Assembly: GCA_022605425.2 (NCBI GenBank)
Contig: CM061253.1
Location: forward strand, 558,001-622,000
Direction: 5' to 3'
DNA length: 64,000 nt
Source of the DNA: Hamiltosporidium tvaerminnensis FI-OER-3-3
Taxonomy: Eukaryota; Fungi; Microsporidia
The translations under genes and the position numbers were made by a program. Below the pieces are notes generated by a model. The model saw only the letters and a list, made by a program, of their open reading frames with translations. It was not told where the DNA came from and ran no database searches. Positions 4,322 through 63,400 of this stretch are shown here, one piece after another; positions within the stretch are counted from its first letter, which is position 1; the number at the start of each line of letters is the position of its first letter.

Positions 4322-4500
4322 TGAATTTTTTTTTCATTTATTTCTTTCTATCCATTGGAATCCAGGATTATAGGGAATTTATCTATTGCAATCCTGATTA
4401 TATTTTATTCCGACCAAGGTAAAACCCAAAACGATAATTTCCCTATCAATTCCACATACTCATCGGCAAGCAGATAGTTTTTAATGTGGTTATCTTTCGT
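4322..4500 (-). mobile_element. Degenerate SINE-like family B copy
   Basis: Resembles 30900-31064, ending on + in ccacatactcatcggcaagcagatagtttttaatgtggttatc (shared head). Confidence 0.6.
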
Positions 4501-5429
4501 ACGCCTATAATTTATTATGTACAAATGGCAATCCAAAGCTTTATATTTCCATGCAAAAAGGGATTTCGAACTTAGAACAAATCATGAAATATAATTTGAA
4601 TGCTTTTTTTATGAATGTAACCACAATATATATAAATTAGCATATATACACGCCATAGGATAAAATCTTACCGATTCAAATTTAACATATTGTATTTTTT
4701 TAAAAATTGGCTAGGAGTTTACAAAAAACTTTCAATACAAAAAGTTAATTCAAAATTAAATAATCTTTTGAATTAGAATATGAGTGACAAAAGATAATTT
4801 ATCACAATAAGCAACTCACCTTAAATATAATAATTTTCTTGTATATAAAATATCAAATTAAATATCGAAAATTTAAAGCTTTTATTGAAATATAATTTTA
4901 AATCTAGAAAAGATTTCATCTAAAGTACATTTCTATTCAATAATACCATTAATAGTACAGGAAATATAAATTTATGATTAGGTGTATGCGATATAAAGGC
5001 TAGGAGATACCCCTGATGCAATTAAACAAAAGATGAAACTTAAAGGAACATCAAAGAATAAAGAATTCTAATGCGCTATAAGTTAAATAGATTGTTTTTA
5101 TAGTTAAATTCTCCAATTTTTCGGTTAGAAGGTAGAAATATTAGAAAGCTGAAAAAAAGCTAAACAATATAGAAAGAACAAACAAATAGTAAAAATTAAA
5201 CTATAATAGGAATTAAATTTGGTAAAGGTTATACCATTTAAGTTTTAAGAATTTGTTTTAATTAATGCGGAGTATTTAATTTGGAATTATTCTTGGTTTA
5301 TATTTTTTTAGATTCTTTTTATATAAAATAATTTGACTTGTGTAGTTTTGAAAATACCTAGTACTACCCCTTGCATATTTCTATTAAATATAAACATATA
5401 TATTTGAAAAAAATGAAAACTTCATTAAA

Positions 5430-15399: not shown

Positions 15400-15520
15400 G
15401 GTGTTATATCAGGATATATAGGCCGATCTCCTATAATCCTGAGTTATATCGATTAAAAGAAATAAATTTTCATTTGTTCATCCTCGACACCGAGAGTATA
15501 AGTGAACAGGAATATGTATT
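15400..15520 (+). mobile_element. 5'-truncated SINE-like family B copy
   Basis: ataggccgatctcctataatcctgagtt...ttgttcatcctcgacaccgagagta matches 24080-24170 and the reverse complement of 30870-30960. Confidence 0.7.
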
Positions 15521-16115
15521 AAGGTGTTATATAATTAGAAATTATTCAAATTTATTTCAAGCGTATTTATTATTCGAATTTAATTAATATACAATTGATA
15601 TTTCAAATTTTATATCTGAATAGACTGGTAAAAATAATAGATAGATATTGGTCTGAATCAAAAAAAAAGTTTAAAAATCCTGAGTTGTAAATTTTTACCT
15701 TCATTCTACACTTAGATTCCAAAATACTTAAATGTCATATTAGTTTGAAATCTATTTATATATTCATTATGAAACAAAAAAACGATTTAAAATCCAATTT
15801 ATAGTAAATTATAGAATCTACAGAAAGCAATTAATAAAAAGCTATAACTAAAGTATAGTTTGGGAATTTAAACGGGGTTTTTGATACTTTTAGAGAGAAA
15901 TACTTATATTTAATCCAAAAACTAAAATATAATCTATTTTTATAGCCGAAACATTTAATTTAAAAACAAAATCAATACTGAGAATCTCATTTGAAAGAGT
16001 AAACATTTTTTACACAAAAATACAGCTAAGAACAATCATAAAACTGTGTTTTACATGTAAAAACAAAGATAAAAGATAAAAAATCGATGTAATTTATGTT
16101 AATATTTAGTTTATT

Positions 16116-22795: not shown

Positions 22796-25110
22796 CAGAG
22801 CTCTCCAAACCACCGCCCGCAGACACATTTCATGAGCCTGCAGTATGCCATACAGAAATTCCCTCTACTTAGCCCTAAATTTTTTTATTGGAGAGTGGGT
22901 GTTTCTTTAAGCTAAAAAAATGATAAAATTCCCGTATAGTATACAAAAAAATTACAATTACAAATAATTTTTATTATCAATTCGTAATACAAATAAATTT
23001 TATTTGGTTTTTAACATCTTTCTGACAATATTTTTATTATTATTTTATACAAAAATAAAAATAATCGGTGGCATAATTTATTATTAGTGAGAATGATGTA
23101 GTTTAAATTTATCCCTAATATTATCTTGAAACCGTGGTTCTAATTTACTAGTAGAAATTGTCTTTAAAGATAGCAACGGCTTATCTGTTACTTTGGATAT
23201 GTAAATATTCTTTGTGTATTTCATTTAGAGAATATTTTTTTCACATAGATAGGTAATACCGAAAGCGTAAATAAATCACGAGCTAACTTATGAACGTTAT
23301 TAAATTATATAGAGCGAAGACACTTATTAAATCCCTCATATGATGACTATAAATATTTTTCTTCGGAAATATTCTCTCATTTTACATCAATTATTTCCAA
23401 TTAAAGCTTCTGAGCGAGAGTTTCGGCATTAGTAGCGGTAAAAAGTTTTTGGAAAATTTTAATATTGTTTGCTGCCAAATCGAAATCAGAAGGACGATAA
23501 TCGCAATCTATTTTCGGAATATTCAAAGTTTCTAATGCAAACTCTATTGGAAATGCTGTCTCCGTTTGTTCACTGAATATTTGGCACGTAAAAAATAAGT
23601 GAATTTTTTTTTTGGAATTTGAAAAAATTTAAAGAAAGTATTTTCTGTGACTGTATGTTTCAGGCAGTATCTGTTTTTTCATTGCAATTTTAAATTGATA
23701 TGATTCATATATTTGGTTAAATCTGCTTAAAAATATAATTTTCATAGTCATTCATTACTTTGTAACTCAACAAAGAGGAAATTTCTTTGATATAAAAGTA
23801 TTTCGATGAGTTTTCTACGTCTAACAAACTGCGTCAAACCTTTTCCAAAGCTGAGCTACCGAATTGCAGTAATATATACTAAATCATTTTCTCTGATTTC
23901 TTCAATAAAATCACAAAATTAACGATGATTGGGTGGATGTGATTTTATATAGTTAACAGTTGATATTAAGTGAAGAAAGAATAAGCACATTAAAAACTTT
24001 CTGCTTGGTAATAAATGAATACAAGTTGAATCTAAATCATTGCTGTCATTGTGGTTGGATATAAACCACACTGGATCCATAAGACAATCCCCTTTAATTC
24101 CGAGTCACGAATGATTACAAGAAACGAATAAAATATTCGTTTGTTCATCCTCGACACTGAGAGGTAAAAAAGGAACGGAATAAGTATGTAAGTAGTTGTT
24201 GATATTACTAGTTTAAAAACCACCACATGTCTTAGCATTTCCAGCATAACTACTGTTGATGAATACTACAATGATTATCAATGGTTTGGAATCACTGCAA
24301 TTTTCTGCTGCTTTACATACAAGAGCGACCCACATTTATTTTTTATATTCATATATTTTCCGACATAAGTTGGAATACACTTCAAGTTTTTACATCAAGG
24401 TTATTCTTTGCAATAGATTTTTCGACTTAGTAAAAATATCTTGCCAGTACTTATTTGTGAATACTTAGAATATCTAAAAGCTCTTTATATACTTCATGAT
24501 TTGGATCAACTTCTTGAATAAAAATCAAAACGTTAGCTATATTCGAAATATCTGTTGAGTCATACAAAGTCGTATAAACAATTCTAGGGTTGGGTTCTTG
24601 TCAAAAAAATTTTTGATTATATTACTTGCCCTGTCATATACTCTCCTCGCTATTGTTTTGACCGAAAAACTGATTTTTTTAAATGATTCATTTTTTCTAG
24701 GGACATTTCTAATGCTGACCAATAATACATCTTCGACAAATTCACCGTCCTTGCTCATGTTTACCACGTTTTATAATATATAAGTCACATGTAAAATAGC
24801 TCGGGGTTACTGCTTCTTGGCCAGCATTTACTTTCCTTAACAACGATTTTTGAGTTTTTTACACGCATTTAAAGTTTGGACCCTGTAATTATAGACTTCC
24901 AGTAAATTTAGAGTAATTCATATAATTTTTTTTTGACAATGACGTTTTATATTGTATTCTTTAATTACCGAAATGGATTACTACAAATAAAACATATTAC
25001 TATATTGCTTGATTAAATAACAAATTACTAGCACCCTATTTGTTTTTTAAAGATTGAGAATTCATTACTTATCTTTCTCTTTTTTCCTTATTCATATTTA
25101 TTCAAATAGA
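22796..25110 (-). mobile_element. Buster-type hAT transposon with pseudogenised transposase (GTF2IRD2/EPM2AIP1-like)
   Basis: Minus-strand fragments in the expected order: VICFIC..SVIKEYNIKRH (~24940-25010), DGEFVED..ISFSVKTIARR (24537..24767), HCSIHQQ*LC (~24250), TAIR*LSFGK (~23850), GITYLCEK.FSKMK (~23240). TIR CAGAGCTCTCCAAAC at 22796 is preceded by attTAtat (nnnTAnnn target). Other end not resolved. Confidence 0.88.
23970..24197 (+). mobile_element. SINE-like family B, full length, inserted into the hAT transposase
   Basis: Shared head gtgaagaaagaataagcacattaaaaactttctgcttgg; tail taagtatgtaagta; flanking direct repeat gttgatatta at 23959-23968 and 24198-24207. Confidence 0.8.
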
Positions 25111-25276
25111 GGAAATAAAAAAAATGAAATAAGAATATAGTATGGTAACATTAAAATTTTCAATAAAAATAAAATAAGAATACAGTTTGATTAACGTTAA
25201 AATTTTTTGCAAAAAAATAAAATTAATAAATTTCTTTTAAGCGCTGTTTAACTACCAAGAAGAAAACAAGCAAATA

Positions 25277-26007
25277 TCTTTATTTAAAAGTTTTACATCT
25301 TTTTAAAATAGTGGCAAGTGTTATATTTGTTTTCATGACATTACGCAGTTCTAGGTTTAACATAAATGACTGCTACCCCAACACTCCATCGGTAACCCCT
25401 GCGATACCTACGTCCCAAAGCCTTTCATCTACCAGGTGTGTAGAACCTAAATAATAGGCGAGGCAGTTGCCCGGAGTTCGTTAATGTCCGTTGCATGGAG
25501 TGTGATCGAAGGCCGAAGCCCCCCCTGGGCTCCCATAAGACTTTGCAGCATTCCCACTTACTCTACACTTTCTGAACCCAATAAACTTCTGGCTAAGATA
25601 TATTTCAGAGATTTACATGGGGTCCACCTAGACAGTGCAATGTCATACCAACAGGTATAACCTGCTACTTAGCTTTCCTGGCTTTTAATGGGTTTTATTT
25701 TTATATCTCCCAGGCGCTAAGTCTTCTAACCCGAGTGAGCAAGGCTAGGTTTCCATGCTTTTACATGGCAATTACCTACATGTTCAGCTGCGGTCAGCAA
25801 TCTGGTTACATAAAAAACTACAAATAAATTTGTAGAAAAAGTTTCTCCATTTCCTAGACCTCTTCTCCTCATTACAACTCCCATGGAACAACCGAAGATG
25901 TAGTGTGGTTGTATTCCCACCAAAAATCCAAACAATGATCTTCACACCAGTTTCACACACTCATTGCCAAGCAGAAAGTTTTTTATGTGGTTATCCTCCC
26001 TCCACGT
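25277..26007 (-). mobile_element. SINE-like family A (~730 bp), young copy
   Basis: Highly similar to the reverse complement of 60330-61058. Perfect 16-bp direct repeat agaaaacaagcaaata at 25261-25276 and 26008-26023. Confidence 0.9.
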
Positions 26008-26409
26008 AGAAAACAAGCAAATAATAAAGATATTATTTTATTTTTTGTAGTGGAAAATTTTAAAGATTTTAGTTTTGATAATTTCGACATAACATAACAA
26101 CATCAATTGCAAAGTAAAGATTAAAATGAAGCTAAAAATCAATCAAAGAAAAATTATATGTTATTTTTTTACCTTAAACAATGAAAGACAGAAATAGTTG
26201 TTAAAACAGTTGCCTTTCGTAAGAAAGCTCAAGATTCGCCGCACATCGAAAAGATGATTTTTTTAAGTCTTTTTAACTAAAATTGGTTCGTATTAACAAA
26301 TTTCGAAGTCATATTTGGAATACTTTGACCCAGATCTACTTAAATATGTTTTCATGGTTAATCATACAAATATGAGTTTTTTGTTCCGATTTTGTGAGCC
26401 ATTATCACT

Positions 26410-26635
26410 TTTAGTGCAAATAGTCGAGTGATGAGAATATCTGAATTTACATTCGAAGGCCTAGGGTTTGCACCCCGGTTGCTTAATTCTTTATCTTCCG
26501 TACAAGAAAGTTTGCGTTAGAGTGACAACCAAACGAATCAAAAGAAAAATGTTTCTGAAACGCTTATAACGAAGTGAACTTTAATTCACTCGTGGATTGT
26601 GTTCCCTCTGTAGAGAAAGAAACAAGCTACCTGTT
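26410..26635 (+). mobile_element. Putative tRNA-headed SINE with RTE-derived body and tail (family C)
   Basis: Degenerate A box TAGTCGAGTGA and B-box-like GGTTTGCACCCC at tRNA-like spacing, closing gcaa/ttgc stem, then RTE-like gtttgcgttagagtgacaacc and ggattgtgttcc..gtagagaa. Confidence 0.5.
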
Positions 26636-30840: not shown

Positions 30841-31064
30841 TACTTACTAATTTATTTTATTCCTCTTTTACCTTTTAGTGTCGAGGATGACCAAAAGATT
30901 TTTTTCCATTTATTTCTTCTAATCATTTGGAACTCGGAATTATAAGGAATCGGCCTATAGACCTAATTGGTTTATATTCTGCCCTGATATCAACAATGAA
31001 ATCACATCAATTCTACACACTCATTGCCAAACAATAGTTTTTAATGTGATTATTCTCCCTTCAT
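30841..31064 (-). mobile_element. SINE-like family B, full length
   Basis: Shared head (+ strand cacactcattgccaaacaatagtttttaatgtgattattctcccttc), catcctcgacac 3' motif, agtaagtaa tail; imperfect flanking repeat aaga(a)atatttt. Confidence 0.78.
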
Positions 31065-31458: not shown

Positions 31459-32917
31459 CAGAGGCCTCTAAAATACGGCCCTCGGTAGCAGTTTAGACAT
31501 TGCCTCCACCCACTTTCAAAATTTTTTTGCTGAGTGGGTGTTTGAAAAGCTAAAAATGATAAATTTCCTGTATATTATACAAAAAAAATACAGTTACTTT
31601 ATTTAAAACTATCACATTTTTTTAAAACATTGTGGCAACTGTTATATTTTTTTCATGGTATACGCGAAGTTTCGGGTTTAACTAATAACTGCTACCCCAA
31701 CACTACATTAGTACCCTCTGCGATACCTACATCCCAAAGCCTTTCGTATATCAGGTGTGTAGAACCTAATTAATAGGCGAGGCAGTTGCCCGGAGTTCGC
31801 TAATGTCTGTTGCATGATGTGTGATCGAAGCCCCCACCCCCTGGACTCCCCTAAGACTATACAGCATTCTCACTTACTCTACCCTTTCTGAACCAAATAA
31901 ACTTCTAGCTAAGATATATTTCAGAGATTTACATGGGGTTCACCTAGACGGTGAAATGTCATACAAACCGGTATAACCTGCTACTTAAATTTCCCGGCTT
32001 TTAATTGTTTTTATTTTTATATCATCCAAGCGCTAAGTCTTCTAAGCTGAGTGAGAAAGGTTAGCTTTCCATGATTTTAAATGGAAATTACCTACATGTT
32101 AAGCTGCGATCTGCGATTTATTGCATAAAAAACTAAAAAATTTATTTGTAGAAAAATTTGCTCCATTTCTTAGACCTCTCCTCCTCATAACAACTACCAT
32201 GGAGAAACAAAGATGTAGTGTGGTTTTATTCCCACCAAAAATCCAAACAATGATCTTTACACCGGTTTCACTTACTTATTGTCAAGCAGAAAGTTTTTTA
32301 AGTATTTAATCCTACCTCATCAAAAAAATTAAAGTTAAAGATAAATTTTATTATTATTTTGTAATATAAAGAAAAATTATTTGGTTCTTAACATTTTTTA
32401 TTTTATTTATATCAAAAAACCCAAATTAAATAAAAAAAATTATTTGCAGAATATATTATCACCGAGATTGATGTAGCTGAGATTTAGTACGAATCGATGT
32501 AAAAATTGGTTAAATTTACATGTAGAAATTATAAATAACTGCTTCAGGTGCTTATCTGTTAATTTAAATTTTAAATGTATTTTGTGCATTATATTTTAAA
32601 AAATATTTGTTCATGTAGTTAAGTAAAGCTGAGGCGAAAATAAACATTGAAAAGAATTTATGAATGTGATTGAATTGTGTGATTGGAAGACTTTTTGAAA
32701 TTTCAGTAATCTAGTTGAATATATTTATATAAAAATATGGCTGAATACATATTTGTTTTTTTAGACGCTTTTATCAAACTTTGATTTAAATATGGTAATA
32801 ATTTACATTTAATAAATATTTATCGGTATTTCAGTGTAAAATCAAATAAATTCTTGATCTGTGAAACTTTTTTCAGAAGTAACGTGGCCCGCGAGCCAAA
32901 TGGTTTGGCAACCCTTG
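31459..32917. mobile_element. Non-autonomous hAT (Buster-type) derivative, interrupted by a family A SINE
   Basis: Left end CAGAGGCCTCTAAAATACGGCCC and the next ~140 bp match 22796-22960. Right end GGCCCGCGAGCCAAATGGTTTGGCAACCCTTG. 8-bp flanks cttttgat / ttttagat (6/8 identical). Confidence 0.78.
31598..32320 (-). mobile_element. SINE-like family A copy
   Basis: Colinear with 25277-26007. Flanking repeats caaaaaaaatacagttac (31580-31597) and caaaaaaattaaagttaa (32321-32338), 15/18 identical. Confidence 0.88.
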
Positions 32918-61899: not shown

Positions 61900-63130
61900 A
61901 CTTAGAGCCGTTTACACTTTCTGGATTACAGAGCGAACATTGTTTATTCAACTCTTGGATTTCCGGAAAAAAGTAAAGAAATATTGACTAGACGAGCAGC
62001 AATCCTAAAGGTGGAAAGTACCAATAGAACCCACCATCTGAAATAGAAAGCTTCTTAAAAGTGAAATATAGGTTGGAAGAAGAGGTCACTGAGAAGAATT
62101 TAGTAGATGCTCAACTTGCAAAATTATAAGACGAAAACTTCATTCAAAGTTATATAATATAAGAAAAATTTGGCTTGTGTTTAGTCACTCTACTAGATGG
62201 GTAAAGAAGAAGAGTGTTAGACCACTGATGAAGCGTTCTGCTGCTATATTTAGATAGAAATGTATTCTGAGGAGGAAAAAGTATTTACTAACACCGTAAT
62301 GAATCCGTTAAAACTGTAGATATCCTAGCAACTCGATATGAGAAAATACTAGGCCATGGCTACACCAGACGGCGTAAGGAAGTGGTAAGATACCAGCACC
62401 CTCTCTTTCTAAACAAATAAAGATATAGTCTTCAAACCGAATTGGAAGCCAACAGTTCAATAAATTTTTAACAACAAGCATACGGAGATAAGACTGGACA
62501 CCGGGGTAAGAACTGCTGTCAAGATTCGGAATTATAGACCCGATATATTTATTTTAGATAAAAGAAAAAATATTCTGATATTCATTGAAGTAGGAATTAC
62601 ATTCCAAAATTCACTTCAAATAGTGTAAACTGCCCAACTTATGAAGTATGATCTGCTAACTAATGAGTTAGGTCTTATTTATATGTGTAGTGTTTATTTA
62701 ATCCCCGTATGTGACAACCTGGGAGGATATTTTGACAAAATACCATAAGTCACACCTCAAAAGACAGCAAATCTCTCATAATGCAAAATATACATTCATT
62801 CATAGTACTTAAGCAGACGGTCGAAACAATTTAGTTTGATCAAAGAAAGAATTTATTCTGGTCAAAATCAAGCTGAGAAACTGCATCAAGGGGTGTTAGT
62901 AATAGAGCCGAAATCCAAGAAGAACAATATTATCTTTAAAACAAGCCACTAACGATGAAGATGGTGTTAAGCATTTAAGAAAAGGAACTAATATTCCTTG
63001 ATTTCAGAAGGATGAACTACATTAAAGAACACTATGCTAAACATAAATGAAAGGTTGGATTTAGAAGAAGAGACGATTGTAGTACAAAAGGTAGAAGCAA
63101 ACGCAGTAAACTGGAAAAATGGGTTCAACC
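61900..63130 (+). mobile_element. Decayed 5'-truncated R4/Dong-like LINE
   Basis: Colinear with 58800-60050 (actagacgagcagcaatcct, gctcaacttgcaaa, ctaggccatg, cggaattatagacccgatatatttattttagataa). Many stops. Confidence 0.88.
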
Positions 63131-63199
63131 GTGAAATTATGGAAAAAAATAAAAGAAAAGTGAAAAGTATAAGAACAATAAAAGTATCTCGTCGTGATG

Positions 63200-63400
63200 A
63201 AAAAGACAAATGATGCAAGAAATCAATGTCTGGATTTTCGCTAAGTGCAAGATTATAAAATTTTTTCTTATCTTTACAAATCCTTTAAGAATTAGAAGGC
63301 TACTAAATGGCAAGACTTTTTCTAGAAATCTGTTTTGTAATTTTCATGTAACTAGAATAGAAAAATTGGCTGAAGTTGTTAGTAATTGTCGTAATTTTTC
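63200..63400 (+). mobile_element. Diverged partial family A copy
   Basis: aatggcaagactttttctagaaat..catgtaactaga..gctgaa..gtaattg matches 60484-60566. Confidence 0.6.

Follow-up and report, generated by a model that had tools for sequence, protein, structure and literature searches.

Two non-coding retroposon families of the microsporidian Hamiltosporidium tvaerminnensis with a common 5' head of about 110 nucleotides and unrelated bodies: a putative promoter-like module

Two families of non-coding repeats in the genome of the microsporidian Hamiltosporidium tvaerminnensis, both flanked by target site duplications (TSDs), begin with the same 5' module (the head) and continue into bodies and 3' ends that are unrelated to each other. 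Family A is ~727 bp long and ends in ...TTTTAAATAAA, and family B is ~227 bp long and ends in ...GGAATAAGTAAGTAAGTA. They are composite (modular SINE-like) LINE-dependent retroposons, a known kind of element. The explanation that we favour, to which we give a little better than an even chance, is that A and B are non-coding retroposons dependent on LINEs, that they have one homologous 5' module of ~110 nt and nothing else in common, and that this head is promoter-like.

The source genome and the copies in the window

The window, which is the whole stretch of 64,000 nucleotides analysed here, corresponds to positions 558001–622000 of contig 8, in a genome that totals 21,638,905 bases in 17 contigs and has an A+T content of 73%. 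Its own GC content is ~27% and it encodes a microsporidian 8TM protein (PF17028). An ORF for the ribosomal protein P0 is also found in the neighbourhood. The published assembly of H. tvaerminnensis has 21.64 Mb in 17 contigs with 26.6% GC, and its interspersed repeats amount to 39.56%, with an unclassified 'other' fraction that makes up 25.45% of the genome (PMC10542269). The word SINE is absent from that genome paper (PMC10542269) and also from two microsporidian transposable-element surveys.

Self-BLAST of the window aligned three longer elements (starting at 26005, 60330, and 32317) over ~727 bp, which define family A. It also recovered the B copies that a first-pass annotation of this DNA had placed at 23970–24197, at 30841–31064 and, as a partial one, near 4322. 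A further copy listed there as headless (15400–15520) is indeed a piece of B, at 15410–15523 on the forward strand, and it turned out to be a 5'-truncated insertion with a TSD of its own. Insertions of this type are typical of LINE-type reverse transcription. The copies found in the window are the following (a fifth, B-like copy carrying an insert is treated at the end).

Family B:
23959–24207, + strand: B copy 1 with its TSDs, the element proper being 23970–24194
23970–24079, + strand: head module of B copy 1, ~110 nt (nhmmer head profile, E=8e-27, and alignment of the A and B consensuses)
24195–24197, + strand: junction extension of B copy 1, 3 nt (GTT)
23959–23968 and 24198–24207, + strand: TSD of B copy 1, 10 bp, GTTGATATTA
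30841–31064, - strand: B copy 2, full, ~79% identity to the B consensus (self-BLAST)
about 4322–4503, - strand: degenerate B copy, incomplete, with the head and a portion of the body (self-BLAST)
about 15410–15523, + strand: 5'-truncated ('headless') B copy, approximately B positions 100–225, TSD GGTGTTATAT

Family A:
60330–61058, + strand: A copy of the 727-bp class, 95% identity to the consensus, head at 60330–60439
25279–26005, - strand: A copy, 98% identity to the consensus, TSD of 16–18 bp, head at 26005–25895
31598–32317, - strand: older A copy, 87% identity to the consensus
57265–57954, - strand: old decayed A-like copy with a weak head match, body at 74–80% identity to A

Extent of the shared head

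The A and B consensuses are homologous over their first ~110 nt, with 50 of 55 bases matching at the beginning and 40 of 56 after that, which means that identity drops within the head from 91% over nt 1–55 to 71% over nt 56–109. The similarity is also evident between individual copies, with the head of B copy 1 matching the A copies at 26005–25897, 60330–60437, and 32317–32212 (BLAST E-values from 3e-13 to 9e-10), and nhmmer E-values for the head in A copies going as low as 1e-30. Beyond the head the situation is different. The B body (positions 113–227) compared to the rest of A on both strands gives scores of 10–11, where shuffled sequences have a mean of 11.6. In searches with nhmmer --max all 30 B copies match the A profile at ~1–110 only, and all 34 A copies match the B profile at the head only. 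Profile HMMs run without filters found no A/B homology on the same strand beyond ~110, even at E<=10. The sole other match of this profile comparison was one short reverse-strand hit.

In these alignments the boundary of homology is sharp, at about position 110. Two families with a common 5' head and unrelated bodies had been proposed by the first-pass annotation, and homology confined to the first ~110 nt bears this out, while the head length of ~70 nt given there has to be corrected to ~110 nt on the basis of the consensus alignment and nhmmer --max. The first objection foreseen there, that B is just an internal deletion of A, is rejected because the bodies are unrelated, with the B body at shuffle level and nothing in common past ~110 in the profile searches.

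Copy number, ends, and target site duplications

Family A has 1359 candidates in the genome, the best 40 of which are 92–95% identical to the window copy, and the median identity of A copies to their consensus is 98.5%. For family B we found at least 40 full-length matches among 288 candidates, at 75–83% identity to the window copy. TSDs of 10–22 bp (median 14 bp) flank 29 of 36 A copies, and TSDs of 8–13 bp were found for 13 of 28 B copies. Neither family has any coding remnant, and the longest ORF beginning with ATG in A or B has 58 codons at most. With their variable TSDs, defined ends, a 5'-truncated copy in the case of B, and lack of coding capacity, both families are LINE-mobilised non-autonomous retroposons in the broad sense.

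In the 30 B copies aligned both extremes are fixed, with GTGGAGGGAGG... at the 5' end and ...GGAATAAGTAAGTAAGTA at the 3' end. The B tail had been described as a short tandem array, (TAAG)n, and it is in fact a fixed (TAAG)2-3TA rather than an extended microsatellite; just one genomic locus has (TAAG)4. The copy in locus L054 has a junction extension of 23 nt, and a 3'-transduction search for its source returned this copy itself as the sole match. Regarding family A, a fixed-pattern count of its 3' ends gave 157 matches, which is an undercount since homopolymer lengths vary. Old A copies already end in AAATAAA, and therefore the 3' ends of A and B have long been different and the B tail is not simply an older A tail.

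The junctions of A show some additional features. Among the 28 A copies with defined TSDs, 20 have G or GT... between TAAATAAA and the TSD, and 15 have an extra G, which does not belong to the TSD, before the first base of the element (G1). An extra 5' G at a retrocopy junction is compatible with reverse transcription of the cap, although in A it could also be an alternative start site or part of the element. In three A copies head nt 1–22 are repeated in tandem inside the TSD, with one to three additional units, which indicates re-initiation by the reverse transcriptase after reaching the 5' end.

Where the head is found

A core of 25 nt from the head has 631 matches in the genome at two or fewer mismatches, and the reversed control has 0. 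These 631 heads suggest that A alone accounts for roughly 2% of the genome. The same core had 0 matches in a metagenome scan.

The first-pass annotation had recommended searching with the head alone and comparing the sequences downstream. We ran the head profile (E<1e-3) over the window and 64 loci, ~315 kb in total or ~1.5% of the genome, a sample that is biased in that most loci were fetched as A or B matches. In it we detected ~90 heads, and all of them stand precisely at the start of an A-like or a B-like body, either young A-like (91–99% identity), old A-like (72–80%), or B-like. The 22 further heads that appeared in the flanks of the fetched loci are also all A-like or B-like. The profile had no match in the four LINE loci sampled (L061–L064). 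Among the 56 heads listed on contigs 1 and 2 only one is situated 1–3 kb upstream of a listed reverse transcriptase (RT) match on the same strand, and this one is a complete A copy adjoining a LINE.

History of the head

The B copies can be separated into two groups, B1, which comprises the majority and has one head variant, and the older B2 (L017, L019, L025, L020/L026, L028, and L030), in which the second half of the head is A-like. The older head variant of B2 (...ATTAAAAAC...GAAATTGATGTGAAAATCATTGT...) is also the one found in old decayed A copies, and for this reason the sequences suggest that the head of B is an ancient A-type head taken up by this family, which has been maintained under constraint in both lineages ever since. 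In the head consensuses of young A, old A, B1, and B2, positions 1–45 are nearly invariant, and so are AUCAUUG and the block GGUGGGA.AUA.AACCAC, with variable stretches between them.

The modular origin of B, with an A-type head joined to an unrelated body and tail, is well supported, and with it the earlier claim of a modular build, in which a portable 5' module is common to two families. Family B would have arisen when an ancient head of this type was joined to another body and 3' end, as could happen if the reverse transcriptase switched templates, and both lineages would have retained the head after the joining. Given that both kept it and that the first 45 nt are almost invariant, the head would act in cis on the RNA of the element itself.

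The same alignments could also be explained if A and B came from one ancestor, with no exchange of modules, and only the head, being under selection, had remained recognisable while the rest diverged. The gradual fading of similarity inside the head, from 91 to 71%, and the likeness of old A and B2 heads would be expected in that case. However, old A copies with the same degree of decay as B (72–77%) still align along the whole 727 nt, no B copy aligns past ~110 with the --max profiles at E<=10, the lengths are as different as 727 and 227 nt, and the 3' ends were already different at the time of the old A copies. We consider common descent without a module swap unlikely, and continue with the joining of an A-type head to another body as the preferred origin of B.

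What the head could be

The head has no recognisable relative among RNA families. Rfam at gathering thresholds gave 0 matches in the whole window, and at E<=10 over 23900–26100 the head had no tRNA, 5S, 7SL, snRNA, or ribozyme match; ARAGORN detected 0 tRNA genes in the window. The head had been put forward as novel, and it matches none of the tRNA, 5S, 7SL, and ribozyme models. A SINE in the strict sense has a 5' region homologous to tRNA, 7SL, or 5S, and the head shows no such homology.

These results bear on the possibility that A and B are classical SINEs, with a head derived from a cellular small-RNA gene and carrying an internal promoter for RNA polymerase III (Pol III). With its short length of 227 nt and no stretch of four or more Ts, B could be transcribed by Pol III. 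Within the head there are an A-box-like TGGCAATGAGTG and a B-box-like GGTGGGAATAC ~45 nt apart, a weak resemblance that was picked out by eye and is unscored. Against this origin stand the lack of any tRNA by ARAGORN and of any Rfam small-RNA match in the head at E<=10, the loss of most of the B-box-like string in the B1 head, and the T-runs of A (T5, T5, and T6 at positions 79, 165, and 188, the first of them inside the head). Given how Pol III terminates, these runs argue against transcription of A by this polymerase, which should stop long before 727 nt. A classical SINE origin appears quite improbable to us.

A second possibility is that the head works at the RNA level, either as a self-cleaving or processing element at the 5' end or as a 5' structure that the LINE protein needs for second-strand steps. 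HDV-like ribozymes at the 5' ends of R2 and L1Tc free the RNA from read-through transcripts. Several observations are in keeping with a role of this kind, such as the start of the element always precisely at G, a resident LINE without a promoter of its own (see below), which makes read-through transcription plausible, the three-helix consensus fold that can be drawn for the head, and the tandem copies of nt 1–22 in three A copies, which can be seen as RT jumps at the 5' end. The structural evidence goes in the opposite direction. No Rfam ribozyme matches even at E<=10, and a descriptor of the HDV-like nested fold, with its start set at G1, had 0 solutions in B and, in A, only A/U-rich solutions outside the common head, so that HDV-like, hammerhead, twister, and other Rfam ribozymes find no support here. 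The folding energy of the A head is no better than that of shuffled sequences (z=+0.9; z=-1.8 for the B head), and there are no compensatory changes among the four lineage consensuses. Besides, the extra G often seen at the 5' end is in line with a capped RNA and not with a cleaved RNA that has a 5'-OH. We assign this role a low probability, comparable to that of common descent.

The most likely function of the head is that of a putative internal promoter. It would be a carried-along promoter or start-site determinant for RNA polymerase II (Pol II), with the RNA starting at G1. In A, the T-runs and the extra G before G1 would favour Pol II over Pol III. With such a promoter on board, each new copy could be transcribed without one from the LINE, which has none to offer.

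Resident LINEs and possible mobilising partners

The abundant LINE of this genome, present in many copies and represented here by L061, L062, and L063, has one ORF of ~1256–1287 aa. In Pfam this ORF has a match to RVT_1 and no AP-endonuclease domain, and its C-terminus contains a CX2C...H...C (CCHC) motif followed by RPDIFILD...E, an architecture of the restriction-like endonuclease (RLE) type that is consistent with an R4-like element. Its PDB sequence matches fall on both L1 and R2 reverse transcriptases. The three full-length copies start at the ATG or one base before it (ATGGGTAGAAG...), end in ...CCCAGAATTTTATTAAATAAA, and have clean TSDs of 9–15 bp. Many ORFs are intact and there are identical RT segments. 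One truncated copy is found in the window.

58823–60262, - strand: 5'-truncated RLE-type LINE, residues 779–1256, 98% identity to the L061 ORF, 3' end ...TTTTATTAAATAAA

L064 represents another type of LINE, which contains two ORFs, matches Exo_endo_phos weakly, ends in poly(A), and has no head. The clean TSDs place the start of the RLE LINE at its ATG, and it consequently has neither a 5'UTR nor a head. For the four sampled loci (L061–L064) we can reject that the head is the ordinary 5'UTR of a single LINE, be it the RLE LINE, which begins at the ATG right after the TSD, or the poly(A)-tailed one; this was the second objection foreseen in the first-pass annotation. The LINE targeting of TAAATAAA sites, an idea prompted by L036 and L063, was also dropped, as the clean TSDs show a start at the ATG.

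The head could still be the 5' end of an unsampled or extinct LINE lineage, from which A and B would derive as deletion products retaining the 5' and 3' ends of two LINEs, in the manner of RIME and NARTc. Four full-length LINE loci were inspected, and the other RT classes and three endonuclease-plus-RT copies are represented as coordinates only, which leaves some room for such a lineage. However, there is no head in L061–L064, the A and B bodies have no LINE similarity or coding remnant (their longest ATG ORF having 58 codons), and the single head among the 56 on contigs 1 and 2 that precedes a listed RT match is a complete A copy. A LINE origin of the head is in our opinion very improbable.

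Returning to a promoter-like head on elements that depend on LINEs, the two families differ in what can be said about their partners. The tail of A had been compared to the end of the R4-like LINE, and the resemblance stands for the terminal TTTTA(TT)AAATAAA, ~11–14 bases, with no longer similarity between A and the RLE LINE by BLAST; with 73% A+T in the genome, so short a match has low complexity, and the R4-like label comes from domain architecture. Nevertheless, A and the RLE LINE both end exactly with this terminal motif, immediately next to the TSD, the TSDs are of similar length (median of 14 bp for A, 9–15 bp for the LINE), and both are young. The common stop motif, similar TSDs, and similar youth make the young RLE LINE the probable mobiliser of A.

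For B the RTE-type machinery that had been suggested finds no support. PF14529 has no match in the genome. There are three copies with PF03372 plus RT on contig 1 (C1:588–624 kb), and no TAAGTAAGTA between C1:440,705 and 652,038, that is, near these copies. Endonuclease-plus-RT sequence is also present at C10:354 kb. In the whole genome TAAGTAAGTA occurs 358 times and its reversed control 390 times, which is no excess, and (TAAG)4 is restricted to the one locus mentioned above. A coordinate comparison of 51 matches to the B 3' end with the listed RT matches placed 0 of them at the expected 3' end of a LINE, and the TAAGTAAGTA sites listed, which cover contigs 1, 2, and part of 3, include no site at the 3' end of a listed RT match. 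Against the 3' termini of LINE fragments that have diverged (L025, L054, window 63050–63350, and L061), the B body scored at shuffle level. Among the LINEs searched or sampled there was no (TAAG)n-tailed or RTE-type element for B, and its mobiliser may be extinct. The idea of one head coupled to two LINE machineries is thus half-supported at best, with a plausible pairing of A and the RLE LINE, based on the short terminal match, and no partner found for the tail of B.

Comparison with known retroposons

The closest parallel to the head is Pr77, the first 77 nt common to the trypanosomatid L1Tc/ingi LINEs and to NARTc, RIME, SIDER, and DIRE, which is an internal Pol II promoter and also an HDV-like ribozyme (PMC1874656, PMC3383444, PMC8190864). 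In both cases several retroposon families of a parasite genome open, right at their first base, with a short conserved module, the module is kept while the rest differs, and each copy is proposed to have its own transcription start. On the other hand, Pr77 also heads an autonomous LINE, whereas the LINEs sampled here (L061–L064) lack the head, and our module, with its putative function, has neither an HDV-like fold nor any sequence relation to Pr77.

In Entamoeba, EhSINE1 shares ~70 bp of its 3' end with EhLINE1 (PMC2996970). It resembles A in being non-coding, several hundred bp long, flanked by TSDs, without tRNA or 7SL homology, and resident in a parasite genome. The differences are that A has only ~11–14 terminal bases in common with its putative LINE, compared to those ~70 bp, and that a common 5' head among the EhSINE families is not reported. 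The partner LINE of EhSINE1 carries a restriction-like endonuclease.

Animal composite SINEs (tRNA-headed, CORE-, V-, and Deu-SINEs) have a head or core in common and LINE-derived tails that differ, and the source of their heads is a tRNA, 5S, or 7SL gene with Pol III boxes. They are similar to A and B in that a conserved module has been recombined with different bodies and with tails that have a short fixed repeat, but the head described here matches no known RNA family, and A is too long and too rich in T-runs for Pol III.

Implications for Microsporidia

With families A and B, part of the unclassified 25.45% 'other' fraction of this genome (PMC10542269) acquires names and a structure. If the head is a promoter, it would be a compact and transferable transcription-start module in Microsporidia, and it would account for the success of non-autonomous elements in a genome whose LINE begins at its ATG. 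To our knowledge, few microsporidian promoters have been experimentally defined. We also advance, as a tentative proposal with less than an even chance, that the head is an undescribed portable expression module of Microsporidia (an internal Pol II promoter or start-site determinant, or a 5' RNA element acting in cis), unrelated to cellular RNA genes and moved between retroposons. If true, these retroposons would be transcriptionally self-sufficient next to a LINE without a promoter, and no SINE-like system or compact transferable promoter element would have been defined in a microsporidian before them. Without promoter function in the head, A and B would be a case of ordinary modular retroposon evolution.

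A B-like copy with an insert

One more head-bearing repeat of the window deserves mention.

36396–36830, + strand: degenerate B-like copy with a 216-bp internal insert

This repeat was considered as a third, longer family with the same head and was rejected as such. The 216-bp insert has a single other copy in the genome (C8:639129–639344, 99% identity), and with two copies only it represents a segmental duplication.

Family A and RLE LINE junctions

Among the 28 family A copies defined by target-site duplications (TSDs; loci L032-L060 from the rest of the genome, together with the window), an extra G precedes the first head base, G1, in 15; in 20, TAAATAAA is separated from the TSD by G or GT..., an interval of up to 23 nt. 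Such additional junction bases could stem from copying of the cap, from read-through at the 3' end or from untemplated nucleotide addition. The first 22–23 nt of the head (GTGGAGGGAGGATAACCACATA) are tandemly repeated in some family A copies, with 1–3 additional units, and each junction often carries an extra G:

L055:2230-2300, (-), family A tandem head units
L032:2230-2252, (-), family A tandem head units
L054:1479-1500, (+), family A tandem head units

[quoted passage not shown]

The abundant resident LINE with a restriction-like endonuclease (RLE LINE) has no 5'UTR (L061:2548-6365, L062 and L063, reverse strand). Its full-length copies start at the ATG or one base upstream of it (ATGGGTAGAAG), immediately preceded by a TSD of 9–15 bp, and terminate in TTTTATTAAATAAA. 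Family A and RLE LINE copies frequently adjoin, 35–70 bp apart:

L034:2226-2300, (-), family A and RLE LINE adjoining
L036:1449-1501, (-), family A and RLE LINE adjoining
L045:1465-1501, (-), family A and RLE LINE adjoining

In one case family A is inserted immediately 3' of the RLE LINE tail, and in others the RLE LINE starts ~50 bp beyond the family A tail. That they adjoin so often suggests either that both favour the same A+T-rich sites or that they are nested where repeats are dense.

Segmental duplications and other elements

A degenerate B-like copy contains a 216-bp insert (window 36555-36770) whose sole other genomic copy, 99% identical, is found ~44 kb away at C8:639129-639344, as would be expected from segmental duplication within this region. 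Three near-identical family B copies with identical flanks, spaced ~14 kb apart on contig 4 (G000:C4:489317-517717; L005, L006 and L010), are a tandem segmental triplication, and a fourth, related copy is located on contig 14 (L011).

For the candidate tRNA-derived SINE at window 26410-26635, ARAGORN does not call a tRNA and there were no Rfam matches at the gathering threshold.

A second LINE type (L064, G000:C4:3800-12500) has a poly(A) tail and two ORFs, with a weak AP-endonuclease match. Many RT matches of its class, '1-204', fall <60 kb from contig starts, suggesting a subtelomeric preference:

C4: 7.8 kb, class '1-204' RT match
C9: 2.5 and 6 kb, class '1-204' RT matches
C7: 16 kb, class '1-204' RT match
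C13: 51 and 59 kb, class '1-204' RT matches
C14: 51 kb, class '1-204' RT match
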